Program-made: the position numbers and the translations under genes
Shown: in pieces, positions 16,669-62,875 of the stretch
Layout: each line of letters begins with the position of its first letter
Numbering within the stretch: position 1 is the stretch's first letter
Assembly: GCA_964035545.1 (NCBI GenBank)
Contig: OZ037773.1
Span: 2,571,751-2,635,750 of the forward strand
Origin: Bugula neritina
Taxonomy: Eukaryota > Animalia > Bryozoa
Length of the DNA stretch: 64,000 nt
Direction: 5' to 3'
The notes under the pieces: model-generated
What the model was told of the DNA's origin: nothing
Database searches by the model: none
What the model saw: only the letters and a program-made list of their open reading frames with translations

Positions 16669-19600
16669 ATGCTTACTCAATGTTGGATTTTAACTCAACT
16701 CAGCATGATTCTGATGTGGGTAGGTGACTGTGTGTGATGACTAAGAAGTGACAGCGTTGGTTTCACTTGATATGTACTAGAATGTTTCTCTACTGCTACT
16801 CTGCCTCTACTAGTCTGTCTCTACTACTCTGTCTCTCTACTACTCTGTCTCTCTACTACTCTGCGTCTCTCTACTCTGCCTCTACAACTCTGTCTCTAAT
16901 ACTACGTCTCTCTACTACTCTGCGTCTCTCTACTCTGTCTCTACTACTCTGTCTCTACTACTCTGTCTCTACTACTACTCTGTCTCTCTACTACTCTGTC
17001 TCTCTACTACTCTGTCTCTACTACTCTGTCTCTCTACTACTCTGCGTCTCTCTACTCTGCCTCTACTACTCTGTCTCTACTACTCTGTCTCTTTACTACT
17101 CTGTCTCTACTACTCTGTCTCTACTACTCTGTCTCTCTACTACTCTGTATCTACTACTCTGTCTCTCTACTACTCTGTATCTACTACTCTCTCTCTACTA
17201 CTCTGTCTCTGCTACTACTCTGTCTCTCTACCACTCTGTCTCTCTACTACTCTGTCTCTCTGCTACTCTGTCTCTCTACTACTCTGTCTCTCTACTACTC
17301 TGTCTCACTACTTTGTCTCTACTACTCTGTTTCTCTACTACTCTGTCTCTCTACTACTCTCTCTCTACTACTCTGTCTCTCTACTACTCTGTTTCTACTA
17401 CTCTGTCTCTCTACTACTCTGTCTCTTTACTACTCTGTCTCTACTACTCTGTCTCTCTACTACTCTGTCTCTTTACTACTCTGTCTCTCTACTACTCTGT
17501 CTCTACTACTCTGTCTCTCTACTACTCTGTCTCTCTGCTACTCTGTCTCTCTACTACTCTGTCTCTCTACTACTCTGTCTCTACTACTCTGTCTCTCTAC
17601 TACTCTGTCTCTCTACTACTCTGCGTCTCTCTACTCTGCCTCTACTACTCTGTATCTACTACTCTGTTTCTACTACTCTGTCTCTCTACTACTCTGTCTC
17701 TCTACTATTCTGTCGCTCTACTACTCTGTCTCTACCACTCTGTCTCTACTACTACTCTGTCTCTCTACTACTCTGTCTCTACTACTCTGTCTCTACTACT
17801 CTGTTTCTACTACTCTGTCTCTCTACTACTCTGTCTCTCTACTACTCTGTCTCTACTACTCTGTCTCTCTACTACTCTGCGTCTCTCTACTCTGCCTCTA
17901 CTACTCTGTCTCTACTACTCTGTCTCTCTACTACTCTGCGTCTCTCTACTCTGCCTCTACTACTCTGTATCTACTACTCTGTCTCTACTACTACTCTGTC
18001 TCTCTACTACTCTCTCTCTACCACCCTGTCTCTACTACTCTGTCTCTCTACTACTCTGTCTCTCTACTACTCTGTCTCTACCACTCTGTTTCTACTACTC
18101 TGTCTCTCTACTACTCTGTCTCTCTACTACTCTGTCTCTCTACTATTCTGTCTCTCTACTACTCTGTCTCTACAACTCTGTCTCTCTACTATTCTGTCCC
18201 TCTACTACTCTGTCTCTACAACTCTGTCTCTCTGCTGCTGCTGCTTTTAACAGTTGAAGTATTTAATTCAAGTACAATTTTTTAACATAATCCCCTGGTA
18301 ATAAAAGTTGCAGGTTATCATTCACTACAAATATTTATAAGCAGCTAATGATAATGATACTAATGAAATAATATCAATAAGTATATATGATCATCATCTA
18401 AGATTCAATAAAAACATGTAAAATATCTCTACATTGTCTGAACTAGGAGCCACAAAAAACAAAGCAATATTGGTTAAAAATTTTACCTGGCTGTATTTGC
18501 CTCATGCCTTATAACTTTATAACAATTGCATTGTCACAAGCTCAGGTGAAACACACTGGTAACAGAAGGTGTACCATAAACTCTACTTGGTCCGGTATAC
18601 AATTCTAAATACCTTGCATTTGAGTTGCAGCCGAAGCATTTCTGCTGACTGCATATTAAAACAGAAATGTTCTCCTTTTATATAAAATTTTACCTGCGTT
18701 TACAGGTAAGAGTTGTGCTGGTTGTGAATAGCTTTCTGCCAACCTTCCAACAGCAGCTATTCTTAACAACAACAGATCAGTAAGTTGAATTTAGTAAACT
18801 TTATGGCTTATTTTTTCTACCTCCACAAGTTTTAGTTCAACTTTTAGTGGCGATGTTACAGTGTGGAGTTAGGATTTGAAAAAGCATTTAGAAAGCAGCT
18901 GGATAACTATAATCTTTCTTAAATCCCTTCATCATTTGCCGATTATATATGAAGCGCAAATTATTTTTTTAACATTTAAATGTATAAAACCCTGTTTGAG
19001 TGAGTTTGGTGTGCTAATATAGATCAAACTGCATATTTTATGATGCTAATGTAGCAAGCTAATATTGTCGGTTTGCTTGTAGCTTACACCTGCACAGATA
19101 TAAACCATATCGGTCAATTCCAAACTGTGATGTGATTGCTCTACAGAGAGATACGTACGTCTCTGGTAAGATTCTCATAGCCGATCGGCAGACTATAAGG
19201 AGCGTGAATGTGAGTGCCAAGCATGTGGAAATACTCTTTGGGTCAGCGTGGGATGATGCAAAAAGTCTAGACGGCTATGGAACTGATGCCAAATTCAGCT
19301 TCATTGTAGACATGGCGCAACGAATTTCTCGACATCTCTATGTAATGGAGAAGTATTGCATACGGAGAATATTTAGACGTTCAAAAAGAGTTGAAACGGT
19401 GACGGCTAGTTGTTCGAAAAGTGGCAATGCGTTTGGAACGATTGGTACCACCATGTTTAATACAATTATTTCAGGGGTTTTTGCAACACAGTCATGGCTG
19501 GTTTTAGCCGAGACTGCTCAAAATAACCGAATCATGTTGATTGATTTCAGTAGAAATACCGTCACTAAAGTCCTAGAGAGCTTCGAAGGAGTAAAAACTC

Positions 19601-22600
19601 TATTTACTTCTCCATTTCTTCCATCTCCGAGTATATACGCTTTTAGATATGATGAAATGATTTCTATTTCCGTGCCGTCCGGTGAAGTAGAAACCATCAT
19701 AAAGTCTCAAGGGAAAGTTATTAAAGATGGCCTGATTCATCAAGTTAGATTCAATTCTGTAAGTAGTGCAATCGGGTATAACAATACTATAATCGTTGCA
19801 GATTCTGAAGATAAGGTTCTACGAATTGTTAATCTGCAGAGAAATCTAGTTACATCTGTGTGTAACATCTTACCCCCGAGTAATGTTATATCTAACGTTC
19901 TTCACGACATTTCAAAAATTTCTACATGTCAACCCTCCTCTCCCAAGGCTATTGGCATCTTCCCCGAGATCGGTATGATTATGATAGGAGGCCAAGGCTA
20001 TTTAGCGAGTATATTAGTCACAGAGAACTACATCGGTGAGAAATTATAAGTATTGGACTAAACTTCTTACAGCTTATGTAACAAAATTAATAATAAGGTG
20101 ACTCAGAAACAGTATTTGAAATTTTTTGTATGAGTTTTTATCTTTAATTTAATAATTTATTTAAAAAGTTGTAAAATGGTGACTTTCTCACATATGCGTG
20201 CAAGACTGGAGTGTTGAGAGTAAATTATTCACCAGTATAAATGGTTTATTACTTGTGAATTCTAAAGAAAGCTTGTTTTTATACATAAGAATTGAATGAG
20301 CACAAAACTGCTCAAAACCCTGTTTAGTTTTTACTTTTGCTTATAGCAGTTTTACACAATATCTTGAGTTGATAACTTGCTGAGTTTTCAAACAGAATTA
20401 GAGCAGCTGTTAGACTTAGAGTTTGCTCTGACAGTCACAAGTTTTAATAAGCCCCAAACTTGTATTTAACATGTATAATATTAGTTCATCTGTAGTGTTG
20501 TGTTAACTCGGTAGCCCCTGTGGTTTAATTAGTTAATGCGTCTGCTAGCAAGATAGAGGTCTGGGGTTTGAATCCCAGTGGGACACCAATTATTTTACAT
20601 CACCAAAATTCTTTTTGAAAATTGGTGAACTTCAAATAGGGTTTTATAAGTAGCTTTTTATCCTTCAAGCAACTAAAGAACCAAAGTAATTTCAATAGCC
20701 TAAATTCAATACTATTTGGTCCTTTGTAGTATGCTCTCAAAACAAAGACTGTATAAAGTACTGTAATTCTGGAAAAGAGGCTCACTGCGATATAAGCGGA
20801 GACTATTACTGTGATCCGCTACTCAAACAGTGCGCTATGCTGTATGCATATTATTTATATTTTTATCAATTAAAATACATCTTAAAATCTTACAGAGATA
20901 CTCAATATATCATATGCTTTGTTCAGTCATTTTGTTTATAATGATATATCTAGTTTTTAGTACAACTAATAGCCTGTAAAGCTGTTTGTGTTTTGGCAAT
21001 TTTATGCAATCTGTATTCTCAGACTTATACTGACTCGTAGACTTAGCCTAGGGCCACACTGTGCGTATTTTCGCATTGAAGTCACGGGTAGCAAAGGTGT
21101 CCACTGTAGCGTCAGTGACGCGTGATAAATAAAGCTTTCATTTTTAAATCGCACTCGCTTTCAATAAAACGCAATTTACTGGAATGTAGCACTAAAATAA
21201 AGAAATTGGGCTCGCTGAATAACTACCAGCCAATTAGGTGACGACGACAAAGACGATTCGCACTTGCGTTGAAAATGCTGAGCGACAAGTGCGAATGTTT
21301 TCTCAACGCGCACAGTGGACACCTTTGCTACTCGTGGTTTCAATTTTCGCATGCGAAAATACGCACCGTGTGGCCCTAGGCTTACTCTTAGATATACTAT
21401 CAGTTTTCAATCATGTGGTAGTTTAACATAAAAATGACTGTCCAGTAATACCAAAAGATGTGATTTTAAGTTTATGTACCCAACATTAAAATTCCAACAT
21501 GTTAAACCTCAAGATATAGGTAGCGCTTGAAAAGCAGTCTCTCACATTTTAGATCTATTATTTTGGAAACAAAATCATTGTGTTTTTATCTAGAACAGGG
21601 AAAGTTCTTATTGCTTAGTTGGAAATTTGAAAGTAATTTAATGCATTAATACAACTTCAAAGGAAAGATGAGCAAAAGTCTCATGGGTAGACAATTCCAC
21701 ATGTGGAATATAGTGCACTCAGTCGCAGTATTTAAGCTAAAATTTAATGTCAAGGTCATGTCATAACGTCATCATGCTGAGTGGTAGGTGTGACCATTAT
21801 GATGTAATATCGTAGACCACCCTTTCTACGAAGGCATACTTCCCCTCCATCTTGTAACCGAACTGTCTTCCATTATATTGCAGTTGTGGAGCAGGTAGAG
21901 CTGAGTGTGGTTCTGGACACAGCTGTGTGGCTGTCACGGGTCAAAGCTACCAGCTCTGCAGAAAGACTTGCGTAGAAGATTCTGACTGCCTGTTTAACCA
22001 AGAATGTTCCGACGGTACGCATAGCCTGCGATTCAGTCATCTTAGTTTTGTAGAACGTGTTTTCTATATACTTCTGGCTAGAACTGCAAGTCTCAAGCTT
22101 TTTAGTAATACCAGAATTCCTAAAACCTATTTGTTGTAGTTTGGGACTTTAGAGCTGATATTTTTTTTAAATTTATATTTATATAATATAAATGTAATAA
22201 AAGCAATATGTGATTTGATTTACCATAGAAGTGGTAGAATGTTGAGAACATGTGTGAGTTGTAGGGTTAGAACAATGGCTGTGTAGAGTGTTGTGCAAGC
22301 AGCTATAAAATATATAAATTGTAAAAACAAGTTTATCTAATCTAGCAAACCTGTTAGGATAACATGTACCTAGTTTGTAACTGTTTTAATTTCAATTATA
22401 CCACTACCAATATATTATTAATAGTAGTTTTTCGCTGTAATACAAACATAATGTTAGCATGTATTTATCTTTGTGTAGTTTCAAGGCTGAATGTTTGTTA
22501 CAGGCTACTGTGTCAGAGATGGATTGGCAGGTACATATTTCAACTGGCTCCTTTATATTCTATGTTGGTTTGTAGTAGAAGCTTCTTTTTATAATGTGAT

Positions 22601-25600
22601 ATAATTTGAATATAATATATTAAAAAATATACATATTATAATACACTATAATAATTCTATTACACTAATGACATAACTCAAATGTTACAATAATTGTTAA
22701 AATATTTTAAAAGTCCTTTTCAATTACTAACAATCATCTAACTTTATTACTAGAATGTGGATTTTTGTGAGTGGGAAATCCCATTGTGCAATATCTGGGT
22801 TTTCCTGTAGACTATCCTGTTGTATTATTTCAGCACGTGTTTCTCATGACTCACCCAAACTCTGTCTCTCCCAGTGCCACTGCATTCACTTGCCTCTTAC
22901 AAGTACAGTTTCATACCACCAGACCATCTCTGTATGCGACTCTGTTGGCTCAACCATCTTTACTATTTCCAATGCGGAGGAAGGTGCCCAGCAACTCAAT
23001 TTGGCTAAATCGGTTTTACCAGAGTTTGTTACCAGCATCTGGGTTAACTTTGGTGAGTTCTGATCATTTATTAAGTTTTACCCATTAAACTTCATTACAA
23101 TGAAAATTAGTTGTAAAACATTTACTTGCCAATGTAGTAATTCTCTTCTATCAAAAAATGACTGTTTTCCTTAAAAATTAAAAATATAATCTTATTAAGA
23201 AATTCTAAGTGAAATTAGTTTTCCACTTTCCATAAATTTATTTGAAATACAAAGTTGATTGAAATCTCTACAATTTGAAAATTGAAACTGGCCGAATGTC
23301 GATGCAAATTTTGTAGAACTGAAACTAAAAATGTGTTGTTTATGCAACAACCTTCAATGCAGAGTATCAAAAGCCTGGGGGTAAAAATATTAATTGTATT
23401 GAATTTAACAACTATTAAATTTCTAACTGATGGGGCTATAAGATTATAAGTATCACAATTCATTTATGTTTTAGTAATATGTTTGTAGGAGGTAAAGTTA
23501 TGCAGGTAAAACTGGTTGTCATATTGGGTTTCTGTGTGCACGTGGTACCGTTTGCTATATTGATGGCTTTTCCATATATGATTTTAATATTATATTTTAG
23601 CTAGATATATATACATATATTTTATACTTTTGCTTTTATTAATGTTTTCTCATCAGAGCTCTACAAATTCTTCTACGAATATAATTATTTAGCTTACTTG
23701 AGTTTGCTAAAAAATTTGTTTTTTTGTTGCTTTGGTTCTAGAAAACGATGGGTGATGACTCCGTATAATGTTTGATATTAGTGGTTGTGATAAAGTATAG
23801 CTCTGTATATTCTAGGAGGATATCCATCAAGAGTCAATTGTATTCAAAGGTAGAGAGTTGAAACAGAGCTATCCTCTCTCAGTTCTAATCTACAACATGG
23901 ATGACTCAACCTGGAAAGTGGTTCATGATGAGTTTTTGATAGCATCTTACCCTCTCTGTCAAACAATGTCAAACCCTGTCAATAGTAGGTCTGATTCTAT
24001 CATAACATCTTACCCTCTCTGTCAAACAATGTCAAACCCTGTCAATAGTAGGTCTGATTCTGTCATAACATCTTACCCTCTCTGTCAAACAATGTCAAAC
24101 CTTGTCAATAGTAGGTTTGATTCTATCATAGCATCTTATCTCATCTGTCAAACAGTGTCAAACCCTGTCAATAGTAGGTCTAATTTTATATAAAGTTTAC
24201 AAACAAATGCTGATGAACCCATCTCTCTAAAGTTGATGCCGGTGGAAGATGTTAGTTTGGTGTCAATGACTCTATGATTGACTAATCTTTACATGTTGAA
24301 ACATCCTCTCATATTTGAGTGCATATAACTAAGTCACAAGTTGAATTACTAATTATGTCATATTTTGTGCATTTAGATGTTGAGTTTTCTGATACATAAA
24401 AATTAATTACAACATTTTAGCCCAAGGTTCTACAGACAAAGAGTTGCTCTCAATGACGACATGTGGAGATAACGCAGAATGTCAAGAAATATTTTACCCC
24501 GGATGTCAAAGAAGATTGTTGTGTGAAGAAGCAAAAAAAGGAAGCTGCTGTCTATTTTCACAACTAGTAGAACTCGGTATAATCACCTCAGACCTGGAGC
24601 AGCTCAGTCAGATGGACTTCAATAGTATGTGGAGAAGAGCGTGTGATATTCTTTGTTGTTTAAATTCGTTTTCAATTTGATTTATGAATAGCCTCGAGTT
24701 TTACATTTGAAACAATTGCAAATGTTTTTATTTTGTTAAACTAAGGAAGGCAAGCGGTGTTAGGTGTTTCATAAAGTCATGTGATCTGTTAGCTCTGTGT
24801 ACTTCCTGTTTTATTTAGAATTGCAAAAGCTGGATTGTTTGGTAAAGGAAGACGTTGGTATGATGACAGTACAATGTGTCTCTAGTAAATGGGTTGTGTC
24901 CTCCTGCAGTAAGAAAGTAGGTGAGTATTATTTGTTACTATTTCTATTGCAAAGACTTTTTTGTACTAATGTGTTTAGAGTTGTCTTATTTATGTATATT
25001 GGAAAATGAAGTTTCTCACCATAACCGCTTTAGTCCTTGCGGGTAGTGAGGTTTGCAAAAAAGTAACGTGCAATAGTTTTTCACCAGTATGAAGCTTTGT
25101 GAAGAAGTTTAGGCTCGTTCAGCCACATATACAGGTCTAATTTTTGGTATATGTTATGTTTTCACTTGCTATTCAACCAGTTTTCGTTTCCTACACGCAA
25201 CAAAACGTGTTTATCATAATACTACCTAAAACAGTGTTACAGAAAGATATGATGTGTTACAGTGCAGAAATGTGCTGCTGAGGTAGTGCTGCCGTTACTA
25301 TACACTGTGCTGGACACGAGTGCACTTGATAATGACACATACGTTTCCGGTGACATCATGCTGCTGGACTGTGATAATGAGTACACAGACACTGAGCCAG
25401 ACAAGCTGCCTCGTCGGTTCACTTGCACCGACAGAGGCTGGCAACCGGCGCTCACTCAACTCAAAACTGACGATTGCACGGAAAAGGTAAGATAACTCTA
25501 AGTAGTGAGGATTTAAAATATTACTCGGTGTCTGCTTGATTTTTCAGCTTTCAACTCACAAATAGATGTTGGAAATGATATTCTAAAACATAATACAAAA

Positions 25601-28600
25601 TTCAATAGAAAATTTAATATAAAATATTTTTGTAAAAAGCTATAATCTTAGAACCAGCTGCTCAATTGGAAAGTGAATTATCTAAGATTTGTAGCTTCTG
25701 AATGAAAACCTTAATTTGTTGTATCTTAAGACATAAAGTAAAATGTGTAGTTGAAACTATGCAAGTGGCTGTTATTTAAAGATTTGCCCATTGTAACCAA
25801 CAAAATATTCTCGTGTCATAACCATTTAGCAGGTAATTTTTGTATACAAGTACAAAATTTCTATCATCTTAGCAGGTTTTTCTTGTATGCAGATACAAAA
25901 CAACGCTAAAGTTAATTGGCTGTATGAGCCCAATACTAGGATGTGTTATGGCTTACTACGGACAAAGGTAACTTACGATGACGCTGTTGATTATTGTGAA
26001 CAGCTAGAAGCTTCTCTCGCTAAGATTGAGAGTGGAGCAGCTAGCAAATTTGTGACTAATATTATAGCCAGGTTTACCACCAGGAAGTCCGGATTTTGGA
26101 TATCCGGGTTATGTATGTAGGTATAGAACTTATACAGTATGCTCACATCTGGCTAATCTATCTCTAGTAACTTCTATACACAAGTGTAGTTAGACTATAT
26201 TAAAATACGTATCTCTAGTAACTTCTATACACAAGTGTAGTTAGAATATATTAAAATATCTATCTGTAGTAACTTCTATACACAAGTGTAGTTAGAATAT
26301 ATTAAAATACGTATCTCTAGTAACTTCTATACACAAGTGTAGTTAGAATATATTAAAATATCTATCTGTAGTAACTTCTATACACAAGTGTAGTTAAAAT
26401 GGAAATAGAACTCAAATCATAGAGAGTTCCAAGTGGGCTTAATTCATTACCTTTAATTATTAAGAGAAGAGAGATATTGTTCTTTATATAGATATGAGAA
26501 CAAATTGCAATGTACATCAAGAGTTGTTCACCTTTTACTGAGCTTCTCTGTTCAGTTTCAGGAATAGTTATAAAGTACTGTTGGGTTGAATTATTGAAGA
26601 GATTCTAGATAGTTACATAAGAGTTACACACAATATTTTTTTTTAAAATTAAATCTGTGATTTATCTGCATAAAAAACATTTCACTATTATGGATATGCT
26701 TGTTTATTACTTTTAACTAACTTTGATTGCTAATGGAAGACAAATCCTAAGGAATGCGAATCTACTAACTGCAGCTCACTTGTCACACTGTGTCAAACTA
26801 TGTCACACTATGTCAAAGACTTTTTCCCCTATTTCACACTCTGTCACACTTTGTCACACCAAGTCACACTCTGTCACACTTACTATGTTTCTATGCTTTG
26901 AATTATACGAATAGATTTTTTCCGATGTATGGAGACAGTGCAAATAGAATAAAATTACAACCACAAAAACAGTGCGATTTTTTCATGCGTTGAAATTCGT
27001 ACGAGCAAATTTATGGATTCATTTGATGCATAGAAACGTAGTAATAATCACACTGTAATATTTTTCCACAATAATATGACAGACTTCATCCCATACTGTC
27101 ACTTTATTGTCTTTGTCACTTTTATCATTTTCAAGTGTGATCAAAAGCATTTTTATAACGAAAAGAAAACGCTTGAAAGTTATTTCAATCAATTATTTAC
27201 CTATGACTCAGCTTGCATAGTCTAAAATTTATATCTATTTTAAGGTTGTATAAGTTTTTAAACTATTTAATTATGCAGCTGCATATATTCTCAAAATAAA
27301 AGAGGGCCCCGTAAGTAACACCTACACAGGCGTGTATATAGAAGTTGCTGGTTTCAGATGTCTCTGATATAGCCCAGTTCATTCACTACGATGGCTCAAG
27401 ACGAAACTATCTCAACTTACCAAATTCTTGGAAGGCTCAGGATGATGAGTGCTTGCAAATGTCTTTTAATCAGTTTTGGCAAATCAAAAATTGTGAAGAA
27501 AACTCTCAAAAATTTGGAGCCATCTGTCAAATTTCTAAAGGAAAAAGAATTATCAGTCAGTACTATTATTTACCAGACATAATTTCTCTTGAGATTTTAT
27601 TGTATCAACTGATGTTGTTTAATAAAATGACAAACTAAAACTTTAGCAAAAGAAGCCATGAAACAAGCGTAGAATTTATTTTGTGTTCTGTTAGCGTGTT
27701 AGGTATGTTTAGTATATTCAGTCAACTGATGAACATATTTCTATGCTAAAGCAATCTTGTGCTTTTCTTTAACAAGAGCAGGTTATTCCTAAAACAAAGG
27801 TGTAATCTATTGTGAAACAGAATCTTAATTTACAACTCAACTTCATGAAACTCTATTTGCTAGGTATATTTTAATATGACTACTTTACACACTAATTATA
27901 AGTCATTATTATAATAACAAAATAAATATATTTTGAAAAATGATGTGTAAATATTGCAACTTATATGTGTTTGATGCAAGTACCACTTAGCGCTTCTCTT
28001 ACATACAGAAGTTTTACAGTTGAATTTTTATTTAATATATTCCCTTTGATAGCTATAAACTGTATTAAATATTATTGTACACTGTGATTCTAACTAATGG
28101 ACTGTAAAAAGTATAAAACATTTGTTCTCACTGGGGTTCGAACCTCAAGACTTCCGGTCTTGCTGGCTAAGGAGCTAGCCATTACACCACAGGGGCCACT
28201 GGGTAAACTTAAACTACACTAAACACAGTCATTTAAACATTAACTATTACGTTCCCAATGATAGCTTATGAAATTCTTAATCTTAATCAAAGAGATCAAT
28301 TCCTTACTCATTAGTCATTACAAATTTGAACATTGCAGATGTGTTGATAAACTATTCAGTACTGTTTTTATCAGATGATAGGAGGTCTTCTAGAATCTTG
28401 CACCCCAAAGTTGTATTGCTACTATGTTTGGTTTGCAGTGAATGGCTGGAATAGTTGGCAGTCCTGGTCTTCCTGCCTAGTCAGCAATATTCGTGTGCGA
28501 GGGAGAAATTGTAAGACCAACAGTAAACGCTGCTTCTACTGTCCCGGCAAAGTCTTTCAGACAGAGCAGTGCTGTCCAAAGTTTAGTGAGTACAGAATGC

Positions 28601-31600
28601 CTTAGCTGAGGAAATCAGACTAGTCTATTGTTTACATGATCTCTTGCTTTGAATCTATTCCAAAGAAACCAGAGTGTTAGTATAGTTAATTTGATAAGCT
28701 TTGAATTTTCTTGTTAAAGAATACACACCCAACACGTATTACACGGAAAGGGAGTACTATACAGTAGGAATGGATGTGACGTATAACTGTGACGTTGGGT
28801 TTATCAATGAAGACGGTACAGAGGGTTCTACTGTCCTCACATGTCTATCAGATGGTAGCTGGTCCGGAAGTCCTCCTAAATGCTTAGGTAAGTTGTGGTG
28901 TACTGGATGTTGTGCAGTAAAATGGGGCTTGCAAGAGATTATTGGGGATGAAATAGAACGGTTTGATTGAAATTTTAATTGCTACATCAGAATTTGAGTG
29001 CTTAAAAATTAGAGAACAACTGTACATTTGTGTGAAATATACTATTCATTATTTACTTTAAAGCTTTTTGTTATTATAATATAGTTACTCGTAACAACTT
29101 GTGCAATTACATAATAAATCACATTGTTTTTTCAATCAAGCAAAACGCTGCAAGATAGAAGAACTGACAACTCCAAGGGGAGCTAACTCCTACATATTAC
29201 ATCATAGCTCTGTGACGGAATATTACGCCGGGCTCGTAGTGTATCGAATATGTAACCAAACTGGTTTTGTTTTCGAAGGCCTAAATACTAGCAAATTGGA
29301 GATTAAATGCAGTTCTGTAGATGGATGGAGTGATGATTCCATTTACTCTTGTGAAGGTTACAGTTCTGACTGTAAAGTTTTTATTTCTGTTTTATTTATT
29401 GTAAGGTATTTAGTGTGTATGAATCATAATGGCAGAAGTTTCTGATGTCTGGCTTATTGTTTAGTTGTAGGCAATGTTTTTTGTAAAATGCTACTTTTTT
29501 AAATATTATATCAAACTTTATACGATTTCGTTAAATAGTCATGCATTTAAAGGTGTAGCTACTGACGACACAAAAAATATACCTTGTATGAAACATCTTG
29601 CAAACAAACATTCATTAAAAACCACATAAACTGTTTATTATCTCTCAACTAGTTTTTTGTTAATTAATTTTATTAACTAATTGAAACAGAAATAATATTA
29701 TGCTCAACAGCGTTGTTGTTACCTTAACTTTTATTTGCAGAGATATCATGTGGAGAAGCACCCAGGATTTCCTATGCTGTACGGAATAAGACATTAAAAT
29801 ATTCCACAAGAGAATTACCCAATCAGGAAAGCCGACTCATCTACTATGGTGATCAGGTGGTGTACACATGCAATGAAAACTATCATCACGCTGGCACCAA
29901 GCAATTCTCTTTAACCTGCCAATCAGATGGTACTTTCGACAACACTGATGTACAGTGTATAGGTAAAAATATATGTCTGTCTGTTTGTCTCAGTTTGTGT
30001 CACATTTTCTGTCTGTTTGTCTTATTGTTTGCATGTTTCACTGCCTGACACTCTGTATTTGTCTTACTATATGTTTATCTATATATTTAAGTAAACTTCA
30101 ATTTAAAACTAGTTAAGTGTTAATGTTAATGTTAAAGGATGTTATTATAAGAATGTTGCAGGCACTATTGGCTATTCTCACTTTAACTTCTGCACATTCT
30201 ATTGGTGGTTATAGAGAAGACGTGCAATAAGCCGACATCTGAATTGCCAAAGAACTCGTATATAGAGGAAGTTGAGTTTCCTGTGGAGAAAGGTCGGGTG
30301 TTGAGTCTGATGTGTGCGGAGGGATTTGCACTCAACGGTGTGTTCGGTGAGACAACTCAGCTGATCCAGTGTGTGGAGATCAACAGATGGCAACTGGTGG
30401 ACTATAAGCCATGTTTAGGTGAGTTTCTCCTTTGTACTTACACTGTACTTAAACATCTGTACATCTATTTACATGAAGTTTTACTGTCTTACTGTCTATT
30501 CTGAAAGGTTTCGACAGTGAGAAACAGTTTTCGTAAATATATTCGCTATTTATCAAACTAACTATATATGAGCATACGGAAGTGCCATTCATGAATAACT
30601 GGCACAAATTATAGTTACGGTACTACAGTTCTGCTGTTGAAAGAATTTTAGGAAAATTTGTCAACAACCGTTACAACCAAATTAATTGTGTTTGTGCTAG
30701 AATAAGCTGCATATCCAAACTTAACCAAAGTAGTAAAATTTACTTCTCCATAACTTTTATGCTCTAGCAAACTACTTGACGCAATGACTGTTAGCCTAGG
30801 GCCACACGGCGCGTATTTTCGCATGCGAAAATTGAAATCACAAGTAGCAAAGGTGTCCACTGTAGCGTCAGTGATGCATGATAAATAAAGCTTTCATTTT
30901 TAAATCGCACTCGCTTTCAATAAAACGCAATTTACTGGAATGTAGCACTAAAATAAAGAAGTTGGGCTTGCTGAATAACCATCAGCCAATTAGGTGACGA
31001 CGACAGAGACGATTCGCACTTGCGTTGAGAATGCAGACTGACAAGTGCGAAGGTTTTCTCAACGCGCACAGTGGACACCTTTGCTACTTGTGATTTCAAT
31101 TTTCGCATGCGAAAATACGCACCGTGTGGCCCTAGGCTTAGTGTTAGTCGACTGTGGTGGTACCAGTTATTGTAGTTGCACTAGGTAACTGAGATGGTAC
31201 TAACTAACTGAGGTGGTACTAGCTAACTGAGATGGTACTAACTAACTGAGGTGGTACTAGGTAACTGAGGTAGTACTAGGTAACTGAGATGGTACTAACT
31301 AACTGAGGTGGTACTAGGTAACTGAGGTAGTACTAGCTAACTGATATGGTACTAACTAACTGAGGTGGTACTAGGTAACTGAGGTAGTACTAGGTAACTG
31401 AGTTGGTACTAGCTAACTGAGGTGGGAATAGGTAACTGAGGTGGGAATAGGTAACTGAGGTGGGAATAGGTAACTGAGGTGGGAATAGGTAACTGTAGTA
31501 GTAGTGCTACTAAATACTTGACTACATGTGTTTGGTTTAGTTGTTCATTGTCCTCATCCCGGTGAGTCATTTGGCGTTGAGTCGATGACAGCCACGGACA

Positions 31601-38392: not shown

Positions 38393-39737
38393 GTTATATT
38401 TGCTGTTTATGAATCCATGTTTCCTAATTGTATTAACTGAGCCAGGATTTTTGCTGTTGCCACATGACTTAGAACTGGTCTACATGCTGCCTTGTAATAA
38501 GTTTCCAGGCAGCAACTTCAGACTGTATTTCTCTGTGTTAACAGAGGCTCTGTATGTGTATAAGTAATATCTTAGTAACTAATTTTTTTCACCTGTTGTT
38601 TTGGTTTTTTTAGAAAGAAACCATTAAAAACCTCTAAAAAATCTAAAAAGAAACACTCCCACACACCACCTGGATAGGATTATTTCTGCATTTTTTGTAC
38701 TTATTTTGATAAAATTATTATCAATCTTTTTACTGCCTTTAATTTTCTAATATTATACATTGTGTATCCTTTATGCAATGGCCTAAATAATGATAGCAAA
38801 TGAAATCATTGTATATATATATATATAATAATAATATTATTTAAAAATTTGAGAAATAAATACTAATATGTAATATAATTAAATTTTTTTTATACAAAGC
38901 GCATTATCTGTCCATTGGTAGTCCATTCAACCAATCAAGGCGTTTTCTGCTTTTGTTTTGAAGTAATAGAGGGTATAGTTTTTCCCTTGTTGTTTATACT
39001 ACAAAAGTAACGAGATATTTTACAAACATGTCTTAGCACCAAAACTAACATGTGCAGTTTTTTCTCTTACAAAACCTGAAGTTGAGATGAATGTATTGAA
39101 ATATCAACTTTAAATATATAAGTATATACATACTTTAAAGTGTATATATTACAATATATTACATATATACAATATATCATTTTATATGTAAATTATATGA
39201 TATAATTTACATCATATGTATAATATACATAATATGGTATTATATTATATAACATATTCTTATCATGAAATGCAAACTCCCGTTGTATATGCTTTAAATA
39301 TACCACCCGTATGTTATTACGTACCTGTTTTTATGGTCTGTTATTTTATAAGCTGCTAACGTATTTTCATCTGGTACTAAAATTAAAGTGAACTATTTTA
39401 CTCAACTAGGTTTAAGAAAATGCATGCGTTGAAAAGACAAGTCAGAGATAGTAAAAATTTTTTTCATGTTGCAAAGGAAATATAAGTTTTAAAAAATGAG
39501 AATAGTTGCCATTTTAACTTTTTGTACTTTCATGGCATAGCTCAGCTATTTTTAAAACAATAATATACATCTTACATTAAAGGCGCTTTTGGTCATCGTG
39601 TAGGGCCTACAGTTACCCCTACGTGTAGGGAATCCGAAAGCGCCCAAGTTATATTAGTATAACCAGGCTACTATATAATAGTAACTTCACACATGATATT
39701 ATATATTAAATTAATTTGTTTAGAAAATGAATCGCAC

Positions 39738-48700: not shown

Positions 48701-51700
48701 AAATAGGTGTCAATTAATATCAATATACACAAAATAGAGTACACATCATTATAGGAAATAGAGTAAACATCAATATAGGAAATAGAGTACACATCAATAT
48801 AGGAAATAGAGTACACATCAATATAGGTCAAAAAGCGTCACAAAGTGTCAGTATATTGAGTTTAGAGTGTCATAAGACAAAAAGCTTTTTTTAAAGTCAG
48901 ATTATAGCTATTTAAGAGTTTAGTTGGGCATGTATAACATGTCAGCCTGAGCACTGAAGAATATCAAGCATTATAGATTATTCTAATTGTAGTGTTTATT
49001 GTTATGGCAATGGAAACTTTTTTCTACCAGCTAGCCATGCGAACTGATTTGATACACTTTTTGTGAGAGAAAATATTTTAGAAATTACAGCATAGTTGTC
49101 TGGACAGATACATTTGCATAATGTAACACCATGCATGCTGATACATACTGACAAAGTATGAGTCATAATATAATATTAACACTGCAAACACTACCAAGTA
49201 AAATTTTGTGAAGCAGCAGAAAGCTGCAGTTATTTCAATTGATCAATTGCTACATCAGAAAAATATTGCATAATTTTAGGGTCATTTAGATGCTTTTTCA
49301 CTGGCGGGCAGACAACTGCTACACAACTGGAGAAATATACAACAAATACGTTACGCCATATATGTAGAAGTTGTGTCGCGGTAAAACTACTAGCAGTAAT
49401 AGTAAACAGTGTAACAGTGAAGTTTATCCCATAACAGACGAAAGTGTGCTGAATACAGGAATTAGGCAAGTGCTACTTCTTTAAACTCTATTGTAGTTGT
49501 ACTAGCCATAGTAAAATGTTCCTAACAAAGGCATTAAAACATATAATGTCCACAAAATAAAAAATACCTTCACATTTATGTTCTGTATCATTGGTCCAAT
49601 AGCCATGGCTACATTTTATAATATTTTTGGATATGTTGGTATTCTGAAAGACGAATCCTGTATCATTGCATATCCTGTAGACATATGATCCTGTGTAATA
49701 TTTTGATATCAGATTGTATCTTGCAATATAGGAGTTGACTTCCCCTGGTGTAGTAGAGTTACCCCCCTTGGGTGTAGTCAGAGATGCAATGTCACAGGGT
49801 CGAGCTGTGAAGCAAATTCATATTATCTGATTAAAACAGAAATTAAGGTGCATGCTTGTTATTGTATCAGCATTTTAAAACACAGAAATAGCTTAGCGTT
49901 CAAACGCTTGCTAGAGAAAAGAACGTTTTGACGGCACCTGTCTTCTACTCTTATACTTGTTCTTATATTTTTCAAAGAAGTGTTTTTAATAAAAGCTAGT
50001 AAAATTAGTTGTATTTCTTTGTTTTATTAAAATATGTTTATTTCTATCGTAACTACCTTTAAAAAATGCGATGTGCAACAATGCCAAACCAGATCAAGCG
50101 AACCTTTTTGAGAATTTAGAAAATTATTAAATATAAAAAATTTTGATATTTGCACAAACTAATGTAAATTATTCAAGATGAAAAATTTTTTTATTTATTG
50201 CTAGTTTTCTGTATAATAATAATGATCAATGATCAATGATCAGTTTTAGTTGCGCTACAAAATTATGTGTGGCTGCAAATGGAATGATAACTCCTAGATG
50301 TTGCTTTCTAGACTATTTTTCTTTGTCTCTCATAAAAAAGTGACAGATATGAAATGCAAGGCAGCATCAGTTAACCCAACACAAACTTATGCTCAAAATC
50401 TGTTAGCAATGAACATTATTGAGTGTTCTTGAGAAATGTGTCAAAATAATGAAACCGGATGAAAAATGTTTAGTTGATAATTGTAATTGTCACTGCTACT
50501 TTCAAATTTCCATGCTTGGGTTATGCATGAAGATATTTTCAAAAATCATACCAATAGCAAAAAGCATTTAACAAGTTTGGCCAAATATATGCTAATGTTC
50601 AATGCAAGTGTTTAATTCAAATGGTAAACTGTAAGGAAAAAACAGTCATAAACTCTCAAAACAATAAAATCAAAGATATACCTATGCAAGTGGGGGGAGT
50701 ACCACGCCACGCCCCGTCTTTTAAACATTTGATTTTAATAGGCCCTTCGTTATTATTAATTATATCTGTGTATCCCTGTTGACACCTGTATTCGATAGTA
50801 GAGCCAAATGGATACTCTTCTCTTGGTAGGTAGTCGGCAAACTGTGTGAATGCTGTGAAGTAGATACTCGTAACATGCATTCAACACAATGTCGGTCAGT
50901 GCAAATACAGGTCAAGTACAAACACAACAAGATTAAGCGTAGGGCCACACGACGCGATTTCCCCCGCATTACATGCGAGAAAACCCGTTTCGCCTAAAAT
51001 GGGATGTCGTGTGCGGGATTTTCATGCGTCTAGCATACTGAGCAACAAGTGCGGCAAGCTCATGCTTGTTTGATTTAATTAGCTTATCATTATTTAGCAA
51101 GCAAACTTTTTTATTTTAATTCATGTTTTAGCTTTTAGCAAGTTGAATTAAAAGAGTTTCATATAAATTTGCATTTCCGCTTTTATAATATCTAAAGTCT
51201 CTTTGTCGACATAGTTTAAAAACAAACTTCTGTAGGCGAGAAGTAAAGTTAAACTCCAAGATCATTAGCCAATAAATATTTGCACTTGCAACACATGCAT
51301 TGTGTGTGGCAGATCACTCGTGGGATGGGTTTTCACGTATATTAGACCGCGAGAAGAATCTCGTTTCGTGCGGCCCTACGCTAAGATTTCATGAAAATCA
51401 TTTTCAAGTATGGTATGTTAAGTGACCCATATAAAAAAACTGGTGATTATACGACCATGAAACATATTTCCTTCTCACATAGAAAACAAAAGGTATAAAA
51501 AGTTGACTTTAAAATGTTTTGAATTTAAACAAGGTTTCATGTTTTGTAGATAATTTTGTATGGCTCTTTGGCACAGTTAAAAATTTATGTTTACTAATTT
51601 ATATACTTGGTGTACATGTGCTTGCAAATGTATACTAAAACATACTGCATGCCTAATCAAAGAACTGATGGGGAAGATATAGAGCAGAAAGAGACATATA

Positions 51701-52607
51701 TAACTTGAATGTATTTAGAAGACAACCAGACAAGCAGCATATTGAATACCTGGTTCAGGGCAGCACTTCTGGGTCTCTCTTTCAGAACTGACACACTTGG
51801 TGCACCAGAAGCTGCTAGTGGTACAATTCCTAGTTCTGTATCTCTCGTAAGAAGTGGTACAACCACTCCATGGTGACCAGAGAGTAAACCCCTCTGCAGG
51901 ATAATGTATATAGGAATAACAATGGCCGTCACCAAAAGAAAAAAAACTAAATAACAAATTATATTAAATGACTTTACGCTAAAACAGCAAATGATCTAAC
52001 CCCTTTTTGGCTTTTTTATTTTCTAAAAACATTAGCACTAAAAAATAAATGACTTTTATATAAACGCAGCTACATCATTAACTTAGTATACACCAACCAA
52101 GGGTAGAGTAAAGCAACTATATATCATATAGAATGTGTAGAATATATTAAGTATATATAATCTATATGATATATAGAACACCAAGTCATGGGTTCGAATC
52201 CTAGTAAAGGCCATTGGTGATGCTAGGAAGAGCATTTAGTCATAATTGCTCCTGTGCCACATTTGAATAAGTCCATAGTCCACTTAAAGAACCCCTTCCA
52301 TCAGGGATTTCTTACAGCGATGATGACTATAAACTGGTGTGAGTTTCTTATTACATATAGCACATATATAGAAGATGTATATACGGAATAGATTAAGTCT
52401 ATACATATTATTATTACCTGTTATCTTAAGATCATCTCTTAGGCATATGACCCCAGAGATAGCTGAGCAGCTAACTTGTGACCAGGTTCCCCTTTTAGAT
52501 ATACGGAGACAAACGTCATTACCTGGTTTTCTCCACTTAGGTAGGTTTAGGTAGCTCAGCTTTGTGCCGCTTCCAGTTACGAAGCTTCTCTTGGACTTTT
52601 CATCTTG

Positions 52608-52645
<38 letters not shown>

Positions 52646-58600: not shown

Positions 58601-61600
58601 GTTTTGGCGTATTCGCTTTAAGTTGTGCTTTGAAAATATCGCAGATCGTTATTTAGTCATTTAAGTGCAGTAGTAGAGAAATTGAGATAGCCTAAGTTCT
58701 TAAATTCTATTGTTAAATTTTGGTTTAGGGTGCGAGTTAAAATTCCTGTGAGAACATAACTTCTTATTCTACATTCCTAATTTAGAACAGGGGCTTTTCT
58801 CAATTTCTTCATTACTGCACCTACCATTGTTTAGTATCAAACATTTGATCAAAATAAACTAAATATTTAGTTAAACTCAGTAAGCTATATGTCATTTAAA
58901 GTAATACTTGCTAATATCGTAACTTCTATAGACTACCTATATATTGTCCATATCAGTAATCATAGATTTTTGAATTGAAACATTTTACATAATAGAGCGC
59001 TTAACTTTGCTGACATATTTTATTGTGGCACCCAATTCAATGAGAGGGCTAGTCAAAAAAGTTCTATATACAGCCTGTCATAGACGCCATATGTTGGTGT
59101 AAAATTTACTGCTTTCCTAATACTTGACTACTATTGGTTTTCCTATATGAGAGTTTTTCGAACATTGTTTCATGTTACATGCACTATAGCAAGTTACATA
59201 GCGCACTTGACTACTCAAAGCATCAATATATCAGTAAAATAGCAGTAAGCTTAAAAATCGTCATCTTTTCAAAAAGTGCATATGTTTGACCACAAAGTAG
59301 AGCTGATAGCACTATGTATTCTTTACAGCCTTACCTAGAGACTCCGAGTTCACACAGTAACCTAAAATCAATGCAAGAATTTTTTTATTCTTAGTTTAAT
59401 TTTGAGCTACAAGATTTAAACACATTTTACACACAATTTACAGATTCAACACCAAAACTGATGTTAATGTCAGCTGCTGTTAAGACAGAGCTACAGCAAA
59501 CGAAAAAGTGGCAGCAGCTTACAGTTGCAGAAAACAATTTAAAATGACAAACAAATTAAGCAGCAAAAAGCAGGCAGCATACCTGCAAAGCATTGCTGAC
59601 TGAAAAGGCAGTCCTTTGTGTTACTGCAAGACATTCTGCACACTGACTGTTCACTCTCATGGATACAGGTATGTCTTTCAGGACATGGAGGCCACGATGC
59701 TCCACACCTGCCAAACATGTTGAGATATTATGAATAACAAAATTACTAACACTAGGCTTCTTCAAAACTCTAAACAAGATTTTCATAACACAGATGTTGT
59801 AAGGAGATAGAGGATAATAATAATTAATGTATTTATAGCCTGACAAGCAGCTGTGGTCTAGGGGTCAAAGCATTTGAACTCCCACAAAGCCGATTGGGAA
59901 TGTTGGGAAAAGCATTCAGTCATAATTGCTCCTGTGCCCTTTCTGAATAAGCCCTTAACAAGTTTAACAAAAACCCCTTTCATCAGGGTTCTTTTCACAG
60001 GTTGATGGTGACCATAAACTTGCCTGAGTATTTTTTAAATGTAATTATATGGCTGGAAGATATATGGTTTAAATATCAATGACGCATCATGCAGGAGGTT
60101 TATTTCTCATCTCCATAAAAAGCACAATCTGCTAATTATGGGTCGTTTACATCACCAAAAAGCTGTGGTTTAGGAATTGGAGCGTTTGCTTTGTGGACAC
60201 GAAGTCATGGGTTCAAACCCCGACAAAGGCTATTGGTGATGCTAGCAAGAGCATCCAATTATAATTGCTTCTGTGCCTCATCTGAATAAGTCCTTAGCCC
60301 GATCTAACAAAAAACTCTTTCCTTCAGAGGTTTCTAACAGGGATAGCGACTCTAAAATTGCGTGAGCCTTTTTGCACCGCCAAAAAGATTCATAATATTT
60401 GGTAACAATAGAAAAACTAAATAGGAAAGAAGTAGAGGTAGACAGAAAATAAATTAGTTACAACCTCGAGAATAAAGAGAAATTTATATAACGTAGCTAA
60501 ACCTTCGTGGGAGCGGCTGAAATGAGAGATGAATAGAAAATGGAAAAAAGAAATTATGATGTCATATATTTAGATTGATCATTTAAAAAGAACTCTGTAT
60601 TTAGTTACTGGAAGTTGAGCTGAAAATTATGCACCCTGTACACATTCCCAGACACCCTTAAATAGCAACTTCGCTTAAATACTTTTATATACGCAAATAT
60701 TAGTTTTGAGAAGCAGTATATCAGAAAAAAGAATAATTACAAAAAATGACAAATAAGCCATAAATATTTCTACATTTGATTAACATTATTAAATAATTGG
60801 AAAAGATGACAAAATAGCTAAAGATTTGCTACCTACTTCATAGTGCATTGCTTCAATGCCAGATCACATGTTTCAGGGTCATGTATACTCGGCAAACATT
60901 TTTCCAATTTTCCGATTTTGCAGAAACGTGGACAGTCAGTATAAGCTAAACAATCTAAAAACATAATTACTCTAAAAGTTAAAGACACCGCTCTTCATTC
61001 ATTTTTACACAGACTGGTCTTGCTAAAGTTAAAACTCTGAGTATAGTCGATGTTAGATAAAAATGTACCATTTTTACCTGCTTTTCTATTTGTTCCATTA
61101 TTACCTGTGCCATTACAGCCTGTGCCATTATTACCTGTACCATTATTGCCTGTATCATTTTGATCTTGCCAATTTTACCACTGCACTGAGTATAATACTA
61201 TCAAGTAACTTACAAACGTGCAACTGTTATGAACTCGAACCTGCTTCATAATTTATGCAGGTCTAGAAATAAAAACCCAGTGCAACATGTTATTTAAATT
61301 CTAAACTTGAATATACGGCTTAAGATCGATATGATCTTTATATTATATACTTCAAGTTGCATGAACAAAAATTTAAAAAAGGTTGATGTAGAAAACTCAC
61401 ACTGAGAATCTAAGTGTAGTTGAAACTGAAAAATATTCGAGAATCCGCCAACTAACAGAAGTTCTCTTTCAGGGAAGATTGCTACAGACAATAGAGTTGG
61501 ATGACGACATTCTGTGACATCACTCACTTCTTGAAAACGAACTTTATATGGATCAGGAGACATCAAGACAGAGCAGAGAAATGTAATCACCATTGTATCC

Positions 61601-62875
61601 AAGTCAATTATTCCCAAGGCTTTATTCGTTTTGTCAGTTAGCATAACATACCGTTTGAAGACAAACCCGTTACTGACCACACCCAGCTTAGGACCTTCAG
61701 TGAGTCCTTTGACATCGTTTCTTTGTGCAATAACAGGACGGGCGTTAACCGCGCCGTCATTACTGTCTACTTCAAAAAAGATGCCATTTGCAAATAAGCA
61801 GAGCATTGATTGGTCGAAATGAAGAAACATTGTTGTTATGCCAGGAAGAGGGCCTCGAGTGATGCTCGTAGAAAGTTGCTTGTCTAAGTACAACATGAGT
61901 ACTCTCTCGTTAGGTGCTGACTCGGCAACTGCAAGCTGATTGGCTGTTAGAAACACCCCTGATACTAACTTGTTGAATCTAGTGAAACTGAAATTGCCAA
62001 TGAGATCTCCACCCTCATCACAATTGCCTACGAGTGTTGAAATATTAGAAGTTCTTCTGTAGATTAACCTAATACAGTAACTCTCTAAAGCAAAAGTTAG
62101 CAAAGGCTTCTGCACAATGTCAACAATTCCATTAAATAAAACATACTCGTTCAAGTTGTCTCTAACTATGCCATCACTGCCATATAACAGCGTTAAATCT
62201 TTTGATGTCAGATTAATACTCCATATAGCATACGGATCCACTATTAACACAAGCCCAGTGTGTAGATCTCTTTGTATGGACACAATGTTGTATGGGGACA
62301 TGTCCTTATATATTTCATAGTTATAAAGAATCAGACTACAATAAGAAAGGTTTGCATTTAATTTTCCTGCTGCCATCAAATACTTTGATTACTAATCAGA
62401 ATGATGAATTGTTAACACTAAGAGCTAAACAAGAATCGCATGAATATAATATTTTGATACAAGTCAAAACAAGGCCAAACATGATATACTCACTCATCAA
62501 AAACCGATATATACGCTCCACTTTGCCCAAATGAGCCTCTCAAAAACAACATCCCACAAATGAAGAAATATTTTCCCTAAAACAAAATGGTGAATTCAAC
62601 AATTAATGTATCAAATGGTAAAGCATAATGAGAATGAAAATCAATTATAATGAACAAGGAGACACTAATGAAGGTTTTAATTGATGCTGATGAGAGTAGT
62701 CTAATCTCAAAGCCCAAGAACTACTATTATCTGAGGACACATGAAAAGAAATCGAACCTAAAGCTAATATCTGAGTTAGCAGTGAATATAGCAATCTATG
62801 TATGGTTTGACATGAGATAGATAAATAAATGTAGGCATTACTTACCCATATTTTGACAGCAGATGTGAAATGCAT
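39738..62875 (-). CDS. Receptor paralog B, same architecture as A, convergent orientation; terminal exon not resolved
   Basis: Exons (minus strand): 62875-62846, 62576-62494, 62335-61401, 60954-60837, 59707-59583, 59361-59335, 58627-58406, 57698-57679, 56411-56249, 55969-55754, 54678-54571, 53796-53570, 53167-52948, 52603-52418, 51893-51750, 50852-50682, 49804-49568, 48571-48350, 47978-47778, 47211-47020, 46819-46746, 45824-45696, 45143-45038, 44527-44406, 43671-43538, 43069-42919, 42516-42353, 41744-41611, 40499-40336, 39837-39738. N-terminus MHFTSAVKIWGKYFFICGMLFLRGSFG is signal-peptide-like; TM is LVAAFLIPFTIALAIVVLG. Confidence 0.85.
43278..43490 (-). mobile_element. Full-length SINE copy
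   Basis: Reverse complement starts gggagcagccgtggtctaggggttagagcg...ggttcgaacacc; same family as 5085-5305. Confidence 0.85.
45190..45699. repeat. 29-40-bp minisatellite containing repeated donor-like gtaagt (minus strand)
   Basis: atatacttacatatatacagttcagtgta units abutting the gene B exon end at 45696. Confidence 0.9.
45850..46195. repeat. (TG/CG)n microsatellite with 66-bp higher-order unit
   Basis: gtgtgtaggtgtgtgtgggtatgtgtgtgttcgcgtgtgc recurs three times. Confidence 0.9.
48715..48827. repeat. 24-bp tandem repeat
   Basis: ggaaatagagtacacatcaatata about four times. Confidence 0.8.
50937..51381. mobile_element. Related Tourist-like MITE subfamily
   Basis: TIR GCGTAGGGCCaCACGA...TCGTGcGGCCCTACGC, TAA target-site duplication, different interior. 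Confidence 0.75.
56760..57605. repeat. ~23-bp minisatellite (ctctactactctctctatata)
   Basis: About 35 tandem variant units. Confidence 0.95.
57818..58093. mobile_element. Small non-autonomous element with ggtaaaatggcaca subterminal repeats and G-rich interior; related fragment at ~61062-61182
   Basis: Repeated ggtaaaa(a)tggcaca at the left and inverted tgtgccatctttacc at the right. The same motif occurs as tgtgccattattacc repeats near 61100. Confidence 0.5.
61401..62335 (-). CDS. Gene B large exon: NHL-repeat-like beta-propeller domain
   Basis: ORF 61294-62379 aligns with the gene A exon (IQRD, YCIRLIYRR/YCIRRIFRR, FNKLVSGVF/FNTIISGVF, IFPE...GG). Intron phases are the same (2/1). Confidence 0.7.

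Follow-up and report, generated by a model that had tools for sequence, protein, structure and literature searches.

The locus described here raises the question of what two large convergent genes of a bryozoan encode, and whether they belong together as a pair. The window, by which we mean the whole stretch analysed (64,000 nt of the Bugula neritina assembly GCA_964035545.1, contig OZ037773.1, positions 2,571,751 to 2,635,750), is G000:C9:2571751-2635750 of the 216-Mb assembly; all plain coordinates below are window positions. Gene A lies on the plus strand (19083-37828) and gene B on the minus strand (62335-39738; verified exons in both cases). A sequence-only reading had described them as a tail-to-tail pair of mosaic receptors of about 1700 amino acids (aa) and a candidate paired recognition system. 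Here we report rebuilt models of both genes, from a poorly studied colonial phylum for which we know of almost no molecular description of adhesion, immunity or self-recognition. On the reading that we consider reasonably likely, A and B are both functional and belong to a family of type I transmembrane (TM) mosaic receptors in bryozoans (Bugula). The distal part of both comprises a propeller, two Cys-rich modules, a C-type lectin-like domain (CTLD), a Cys-rich and a sushi-like module, a second CTLD and one thrombospondin type 1 (TSP1) repeat, and the part nearer the membrane consists of some six sushi repeats and a pair of FN3-like modules, followed by a single TM helix and a tail with a tyrosine motif.

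The closest public relative of the window is the draft Bugula neritina genome, a contig of which aligns to it across exons and introns alike with 81-90% DNA identity. Synonymous divergence between the two is about 0.25, so the assemblies represent close but distinct taxa, probably both within the B. neritina species complex; the taxon of the public draft is called the sister species below. A second data set, sequencing run X1, consists of genomic DNA, because its contigs cover introns and intergenic DNA alike; it yields variants but no splice junctions. Homology and domain searches were performed exon by exon or with exon-level family profiles.

Gene models and domain order

Comparison of the plus strand of A with the minus strand of B yielded 21 colinear tblastn blocks, which extend at their widest from 19078/62340 to 37521/40306 and climb in identity from 27% in the large first exon to 66% in the juxtamembrane exons. 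Exon models were built from splice donors and acceptors that lie equally far from the alignment ends in A and in B. Wherever this left mismatched phases, the introns were scanned for open segments bounded by AG...GT that had the needed phase and were similar between paralogs, which added three exons per gene (the second Cys-rich module, the second half of CTLD 1 and a 122-nt FN3-like exon). The result is a pair of convergent paralogs with 25 rebuilt exons each at equivalent positions. The features of the locus are listed below; C to F are paralogs outside the window.

19083-20035, plus strand: A, propeller exon of 953 nt, predicted six-bladed NHL-type beta-propeller (phmmer, AlphaFold, Foldseek, dN/dS 0.21)
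20730-20841 and 21884-22014, plus strand: A, two Cys-rich module exons (phases conserved in A, B, F and E, more weakly in C and D)
22834-23052 and 23832-23984, plus strand: A, exons of the first CTLD (exon-3 profile; A/B comparison)
24421-24624, plus strand: A, Cys-rich exon (colinear block, shared phases; without significant Pfam match)
25263-25486, plus strand: A, sushi-like exon (colinear block, shared phases; without significant Pfam match)
25893-26112 and 27358-27555, plus strand: A, exons of the second CTLD (Pfam Lectin_C, 27.2 bits)
28439-28585, plus strand: A, TSP1 exon (WxxWxxWxxC motif; family profile)
28720-28887, 29141-29356, 29741-29962 and 30215-30418, plus strand: A, exons 1-4 of the 7 that encode about six sushi/CCP repeats (Pfam Sushi or Cys pattern)
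31541-31732, 32079-32152 and 32614-32742, plus strand: A, exons 5-7 of the same run (Pfam Sushi or Cys pattern)
33536-33641, 33736-33857 and 34206-34339, plus strand: A, first three exons of the membrane-proximal FN3-like region (colinear blocks, paralog comparison)
35076-35226, 35896-36059 and 36442-36569, plus strand: A, last three exons of the FN3-like region (60-66% A/B identity)
37331-37491, plus strand: A, TM exon (hydrophobic helix read from the sequence)
37723-37828, plus strand: A, first tail exon with the motif Y-x-x-E-x-x-E-x-G (boundaries shared by A, B and F)
62335-39738, minus strand: B, 25 exons colinear with A (open reading frame of 1583 aa, phases as in A)
62335-61401, minus strand: B, propeller exon (colinear with A)
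40499-40336, minus strand: B, TM exon (colinear with A)
39837-39738, minus strand: B, first tail exon (boundaries shared by A, B and F)
39376-39294, minus strand: B, candidate terminal exon (B/F comparison)
37829-39737, no strand: gap of 1.9 kb between the last verified exons
16669-16719, plus strand: A, candidate first coding exon, unverified (from the sequence-only reading)

The first 24 exons splice to uninterrupted open reading frames of 1577 aa in A and 1583 aa in B with zero stops, which bears out the two intact convergent frames of the earlier description. Intron phases are identical at 23 of 23 junctions, and the spliced proteins are 36.8% identical from end to end. The 25th exon is the first tail exon, whose boundaries and phases are common to A, B and F, as are the phase-0 and phase-1 donors of the TM and tail exons. 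All introns are of the GT-AG type, apart from one GC-AG intron in B after exon 46819-46746 (46744-46745, minus strand; ACT|GCAAGT); at the corresponding codon the donor of A is GT. Exon-for-exon colinearity with shared phases thus holds for 25 exons; the count of 30 exons given earlier is unconfirmed, as are its microexons of 27 and 17/20 nt, exons so short that they are not provable from DNA. With the missing ends, the proteins would come to about 1600-1700 aa, near the length first estimated.

The last verified exons of A and B are 1.9 kb apart (37828 to 39738), a distance compatible with the earlier figure of about 1.3 kb if further tail exons exist; the interval 37829-39737 should hold these exons and both 3' ends. 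A candidate tail exon beyond exon 22 was found in B and F, and no counterpart of it was found in A. At the 5' end, a scan for signal peptides (ATG-initiated hydrophobic exons ending in phase 2, upstream of the six genes) gave no consistent candidate. The region around the ATG at 16669, where a signal-peptide exon had been proposed, is well conserved, but the sister species carries a 4-nt insertion just behind it, so that the frame is not kept. The donor of the candidate exon 16669-16719 has phase 0 and the propeller exon requires phase 2, so an extra microexon would be needed, and this ATG is a doubtful start of A.

The 317-residue propeller exon matched no Pfam family at E <= 0.01, NHL (PF01436) included. 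An exhaustive phmmer search retrieved 1577 relatives, among them proteins that carry Pfam NHL and TEN_NHL; the distant ones are bacterial multi-NHL proteins. The AlphaFold model of the A propeller, based on an alignment of 40 family members, reached a predicted local distance difference test (pLDDT) score of 87 and a predicted template modelling (pTM) score of 0.87. Its top Foldseek matches were SOQ1, NHLRC2, BT_3476, Bacteroides surface proteins and the NHL domains of teneurin, TRIM71 and Thin, with template modelling scores of up to 0.75 and probability 1.0, and protein language-model neighbours agree with the NHL assignment. The head of A and B is therefore modelled as a six-bladed NHL-type propeller resembling solved NHL domains, in agreement with the NHL-like propeller proposed from sequence.

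The Cys-rich module exons (20730-20841 and 21884-22014) had no Pfam or PDB match, nor did a PDB profile search with Cys-rich exon 2 return one. The presence of two CTLDs is supported. The exon-3 family profile of CTLD 1 matches the CTLDs of FcRY, PLA2R, the mannose receptor (MRC1) and E-selectin in PDB (E 9e-6 to 4e-3), and its second-half exon was recovered by A/B comparison; a direct hhalign comparison of the two CTLDs reached only E 0.09, and CTLD 1 was assigned through the PDB matches instead. CTLD 2 exceeds the Pfam Lectin_C cut-off in A (27.2 vs 22.6 bits) and matches Lectin_C at E 0.013 in B. Neither the EPN/QPD nor the WND motif stands at its expected position in the spliced CTLD 2 of A or B, so sugar binding is not to be assumed.

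The TSP1 repeat and the sushi run likewise agree with the original description. The exon-8 family profile matches the TSP1 repeats of thrombospondin-1 at E 4e-17, and also properdin, UNC5 and C6; Pfam TSP_1 reaches 8e-6 in paralogs. No EGF domain was matched by Pfam in A, where the TSP1 repeat stands between CTLD 2 and the sushi run. About six sushi repeats were recognised in A: repeats 1, 3 and 5 lie above the Pfam Sushi cut-off, repeat 6 just under it (19.9 vs 20.7 bits), repeat 4 is a weak match and repeat 2 was called by its Cys pattern only. B also has Pfam Sushi and Lectin_C matches, and CTLD 2 and most of the sushi repeats exceed Pfam thresholds in one or both genes.

No other part of the family is as well conserved as the juxtamembrane exons (35076-36569), in which A and B are 60-66% identical. 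Pfam searches with single juxtamembrane exons and PDB profile searches with exons 18 and 19 gave no match. The exon-20 profile weakly matches an FN3 domain of IFNAR1 (E 0.0098), and the sequence pattern of exons 16-20 fits FN3 strands. A TM helix can be read directly from both sequences and is uncharged in both. As had been proposed, the tail is short; it comprises at least 60 residues without a catalytic domain, and its first exon carries the motif Y-x-x-E-x-x-[DE]-x-G-x-x-x-G in A, B and F.

The juxtamembrane region had been labelled as that of a receptor-type protein tyrosine phosphatase (RPTP), a label for which we find no support. The phosphatase domain (PF00102) has about 150 matches genome-wide, and among the matches listed none falls within C9:2.57-2.70 Mb. 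PTP_tm (PF18861) gave sub-threshold matches only at RPTP clusters on contigs C5, C6, C3 and C1, and none at the A/B locus. The juxtamembrane module occurs in five genes of the genome (A, B, F and one gene each on contig C2 at 33.24 Mb and contig C7 at 5.35 Mb), and no phosphatase exon was found near any of them. RPTPs resemble A and B in their type I topology and FN3-like membrane-proximal modules; the true RPTP clusters of this genome show both the phosphatase domain and the PTP_tm signal, and A and B show neither. Elsewhere in the assembly, tandem arrays of phosphatase exons with adjoining PTP_tm-like signals (C1 3.96-4.23 Mb, C6 8.0-8.4 Mb, C5 1.3-2.3 Mb and C3 7.6-8.1 Mb) indicate a marked RPTP expansion.

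The six-gene cluster, its orthologs and selection

A search of the whole assembly with the propeller exon picked out six strong copies, all located within 110 kb of each other on the contig of the window: A (plus), B (minus), C (plus), D (plus), E (minus) and F (minus). A, B and F are long forms, and F, the third of these full-length colinear genes, is reached after 45 kb on the far side of an unrelated gene; C, D and E consist of the propeller exon and two Cys-rich exons only and may be secreted. The unrelated gene, between B and C, is ASPM-like (G000:C9:2636400-2653000, minus strand, just past the window end); its exons include one of 954 codons packed with IQ motifs and one for a calponin-homology domain. 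A and B are thus convergent neighbours, as the sequence-only reading had it, and its term 'pair' is misleading, since they are two of six clustered paralogs.

The propellers of the cluster are mutually 25-46% identical. In the juxtamembrane and TM-proximal exons, A is 43-57% identical to F and 60-66% to B. B and F share a 375-nt tract of 85% DNA identity (48338-48704, minus strand; G000:C9 ~2689338-2689692) that takes in the third sushi exon together with some 130 nt of intron upstream of it; at the protein level the exon reaches 91% identity, and the rest of B and F shows no DNA-level alignment. The tract looks like an old gene conversion or exon exchange.

The genome contains at least 32 propeller exons, of which at least 26 are more distant and clustered on contigs C8, C2, C4 and C7. 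In the two distant copies examined, the next open frame is a Ser/Thr-rich stalk with a TM segment, so that ectodomain use of the propeller extends to a larger family. Around the distant propeller exons, to a distance of about 1 kb, no homologs of the Cys-rich exons turned up. The copies at G000:C8:7604000-7617600 and in other clusters on C8 and C2 are spaced 7-40 kb apart; together with the stalk and TM segment seen in two cases, they suggest that small type I propeller receptors form a family of their own. Two further relatives of A and B (G000:C2:33239000-33249000 and G000:C7:5348000-5360000) carry TSP1, sushi and juxtamembrane exons in the same order, and the one on C2 has Cys-rich and CTLD exons in addition; no propeller exon was detected with either.

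All six propellers of the cluster have their own 1:1 ortholog (87-94% identity) in B. neritina or in bryozoan-associated metagenomes; the propeller of A matches KAF6026455.1 with 88.5% protein identity, and that of B matches KAF6038792.1 with 90%. Given an identity of only 25-46% among the paralogs, the cluster must be much older than the split between the taxa, and all six members have been retained. The ratio of nonsynonymous to synonymous substitution rates (dN/dS) between A and the sister species was 0.18 over 1003 codons in 12 exons aligned without gaps, with values of 0.06-0.41 per exon and 0.21 in the propeller exon; for B it was 0.21 over 482 codons in four exons. In a 40-codon sliding window along the A propeller, dN/dS had a maximum of 0.70 and never exceeded 1, and the 36 substitutions in this domain are mostly conservative. 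Comparison of X1 with the assembly covered C-terminal exons only (exons 19-21 of A and exon 21 of B) and gave 14 coding differences, 12 of them synonymous, including all four in the TM exon of A. A and B are under purifying selection, and the dN/dS values of both genes and the synonymous excess in X1 show that the exons are real coding sequence. The selection tests give no sign of diversifying selection as seen at known allorecognition loci, a result with which a recognition role stays compatible. The conserved cluster of six genes is a concrete candidate set for expression and population studies.

Probable nature of the two proteins

If A and B are members of a family of type I mosaic receptors, the propeller would act as a ligand-binding head held off the membrane on a long adhesive stalk, and the tail would signal or be internalised via adaptor proteins. 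The two genes stem from an old duplication (37% identity) inside the six-paralog cluster, and their convergent arrangement is most simply an accident of cluster growth. We infer a role in cell adhesion or in recognising foreign surfaces, microbial or other. The combination of an NHL propeller with a stalk of lectin-like, TSP1, sushi and FN3-like modules is one that neither the exon-level searches nor the literature search matched to any described family, so that the architecture may still be called unrecognised; the literature search likewise found no description of any bryozoan allorecognition gene. Several points weigh against this reading. Both gene models are known from DNA alone. The type I topology draws on the domain types and the single TM helix, with no signal peptide identified, and the FN3-like assignment on the one weak match to IFNAR1. 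A 'lectin' function is doubtful in lectin-like domains that lack the sugar-binding motifs, and a restriction to Bugula-like bryozoans is apparent in exon-level searches.

A dedicated two-gene recognition unit or heterodimer, kept co-inherited or co-regulated by its tail-to-tail layout, would account for the position of A and B as convergent neighbours with at most 1.9 kb between verified exons and 3' ends that may overlap, and for their juxtamembrane and TM-proximal exons being mutual closest relatives. We regard such a unit as very improbable. The cluster has six paralogs, not two, with the ASPM-like gene inside it and a full-length F beyond that gene, and a convergent orientation of two neighbours is expected by chance in one case out of four. 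Classical paired receptors combine ectodomains that hardly differ with tails of opposite signalling or a charged residue in the TM; A and B have ectodomains of 27-45% identity, uncharged TM helices and tails that share the Y-x-x-E motif exon. Even less weight goes to the reading of the cluster as a bryozoan locus for allorecognition (colony fusion or kin recognition). Like Hydractinia Alr1/2 and Botryllus fuhc with fester and uncle fester, it comprises clustered, divergent surface paralogs in a colonial marine animal, and sushi domains are shared with fester; the conversion-like tract joins B and F, and the absence of any known bryozoan allorecognition gene in the literature search leaves room for such a locus. 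Known allodeterminants are marked by extreme amino-acid polymorphism. In A and B, signs of diversifying selection were looked for in dN/dS and in the C-terminal exons covered by X1 and were not seen; the clean 1:1 orthologs, the dN/dS of about 0.2 with no sliding window above 1 in the A propeller, the conservative substitutions and the 12 silent differences out of 14 all speak for conservation. Neither gene has homology to known allodeterminants, Alr proteins being Ig-like. These results leave the allorecognition reading unsupported rather than refuted.

A low but appreciable probability remains for A and B being innate pattern- or symbiont-recognition receptors within a wider expansion of extracellular NHL propellers. 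Many complement and innate recognition proteins contain CTLD, TSP1 and sushi domains, the 32 or more propeller exons are clustered on several contigs and in the two cases examined precede a mucin-like stalk and a TM segment, and the short, possibly secreted C, D and E adjoin the long forms. However, the lectin-like domains lack the canonical sugar-binding residues, and strong purifying selection with 1:1 orthology fits a conserved endogenous ligand at least as well. A broader version, which we find improbable, is that Bugula has an undescribed surface-receptor repertoire built on the extracellular, single-exon NHL propeller, of which the C9 cluster is the most elaborate branch, serving the recognition of non-self (such as conspecific colonies, larvae or the B. 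neritina bacterial symbiont); long and short forms might act jointly as receptor and soluble partner or decoy.

In layout, A and B come closest to selectins or Furrowed and to multi-CTLD endocytic receptors. Selectins and Drosophila Furrowed are likewise type I proteins whose lectin-type domain lies farther from the membrane than their sushi repeats; they span the membrane once and end in a short tail without catalytic domain, and the CTLD of E-selectin is among those matched by the exon-3 profile. A and B depart from the selectin order (CTLD, EGF, sushi, TM) by a TSP1 repeat in place of EGF, and from both by two CTLDs without EPN or WND, an N-terminal propeller with Cys-rich modules and FN3-like modules near the membrane. 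The family of the mannose receptor, PLA2R and DEC-205 provides the best matches of CTLD 1 (E 9e-6 to 2e-3) and likewise consists of type I proteins with a short tail, some of whose CTLDs do not bind sugar; A and B lack their ricin-type and FNII domains and have only two CTLDs, interleaved with other modules, and the mannose receptor family itself is without the sushi, TSP1 and propeller domains of A and B. Teneurin, NHLRC2 and bacterial NHL surface proteins share the six-bladed NHL fold, but A and B have no YD shell, toxin-like domain or thioredoxin domain, and differ from other extracellular NHL propellers in that a type I protein carries the propeller as its N-terminal head, with one exon encoding all of it. 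A and B are neither RPTPs nor Ig-type allodeterminants, neither classical paired receptors nor selectins or multi-CTLD endocytic receptors. As far as present evidence goes, they are mosaic receptors of an ordinary kind, conserved and specific to their lineage, and not a special paired system.

Repeats and public annotation

The intron upstream of the A propeller contains a 1.45-kb tandem repeat of a 16-nt unit (16787-18233) with a stop-free frame of 496 codons, and KAF6026455.1 of B. neritina translates the equivalent repeat as coding sequence, which is a mis-annotation. Public B. neritina annotation of these genes consists of fragments only. The contig VXIV02000351.1 starts (position 1) inside gene B, so A and B lie on separate contigs in the public draft.

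A 63-nt tandem repeat (23939-24193; 4 copies, 91% matches) starts inside the second CTLD 1 exon of A and repeats a donor-like site in frame, which offers more than one candidate donor for this exon. Repeats of about 200 nt occur in introns of both genes (41270-41490, 43284-43490, 31888-32060, 52177-52345 and 60161-60377; a further copy is listed at 5083-5304). Their word depth in X1 is extreme (>400,000 at 41200-41400) and their loose-end consensus is tRNA-like, and they are probably a very abundant short interspersed element (SINE). Introns of A and the region downstream of F contain paired segments of 70-80 nt (21045-21382, 30788-31138, 33101-33450 and G000:C9 ~2678986-2679336). The members of a pair are spaced about 200 nt apart, identity between loci is 84-97%, and each pair has the appearance of the two ends of a short repeated element, about 350 nt long and resembling a miniature inverted-repeat transposable element (MITE).

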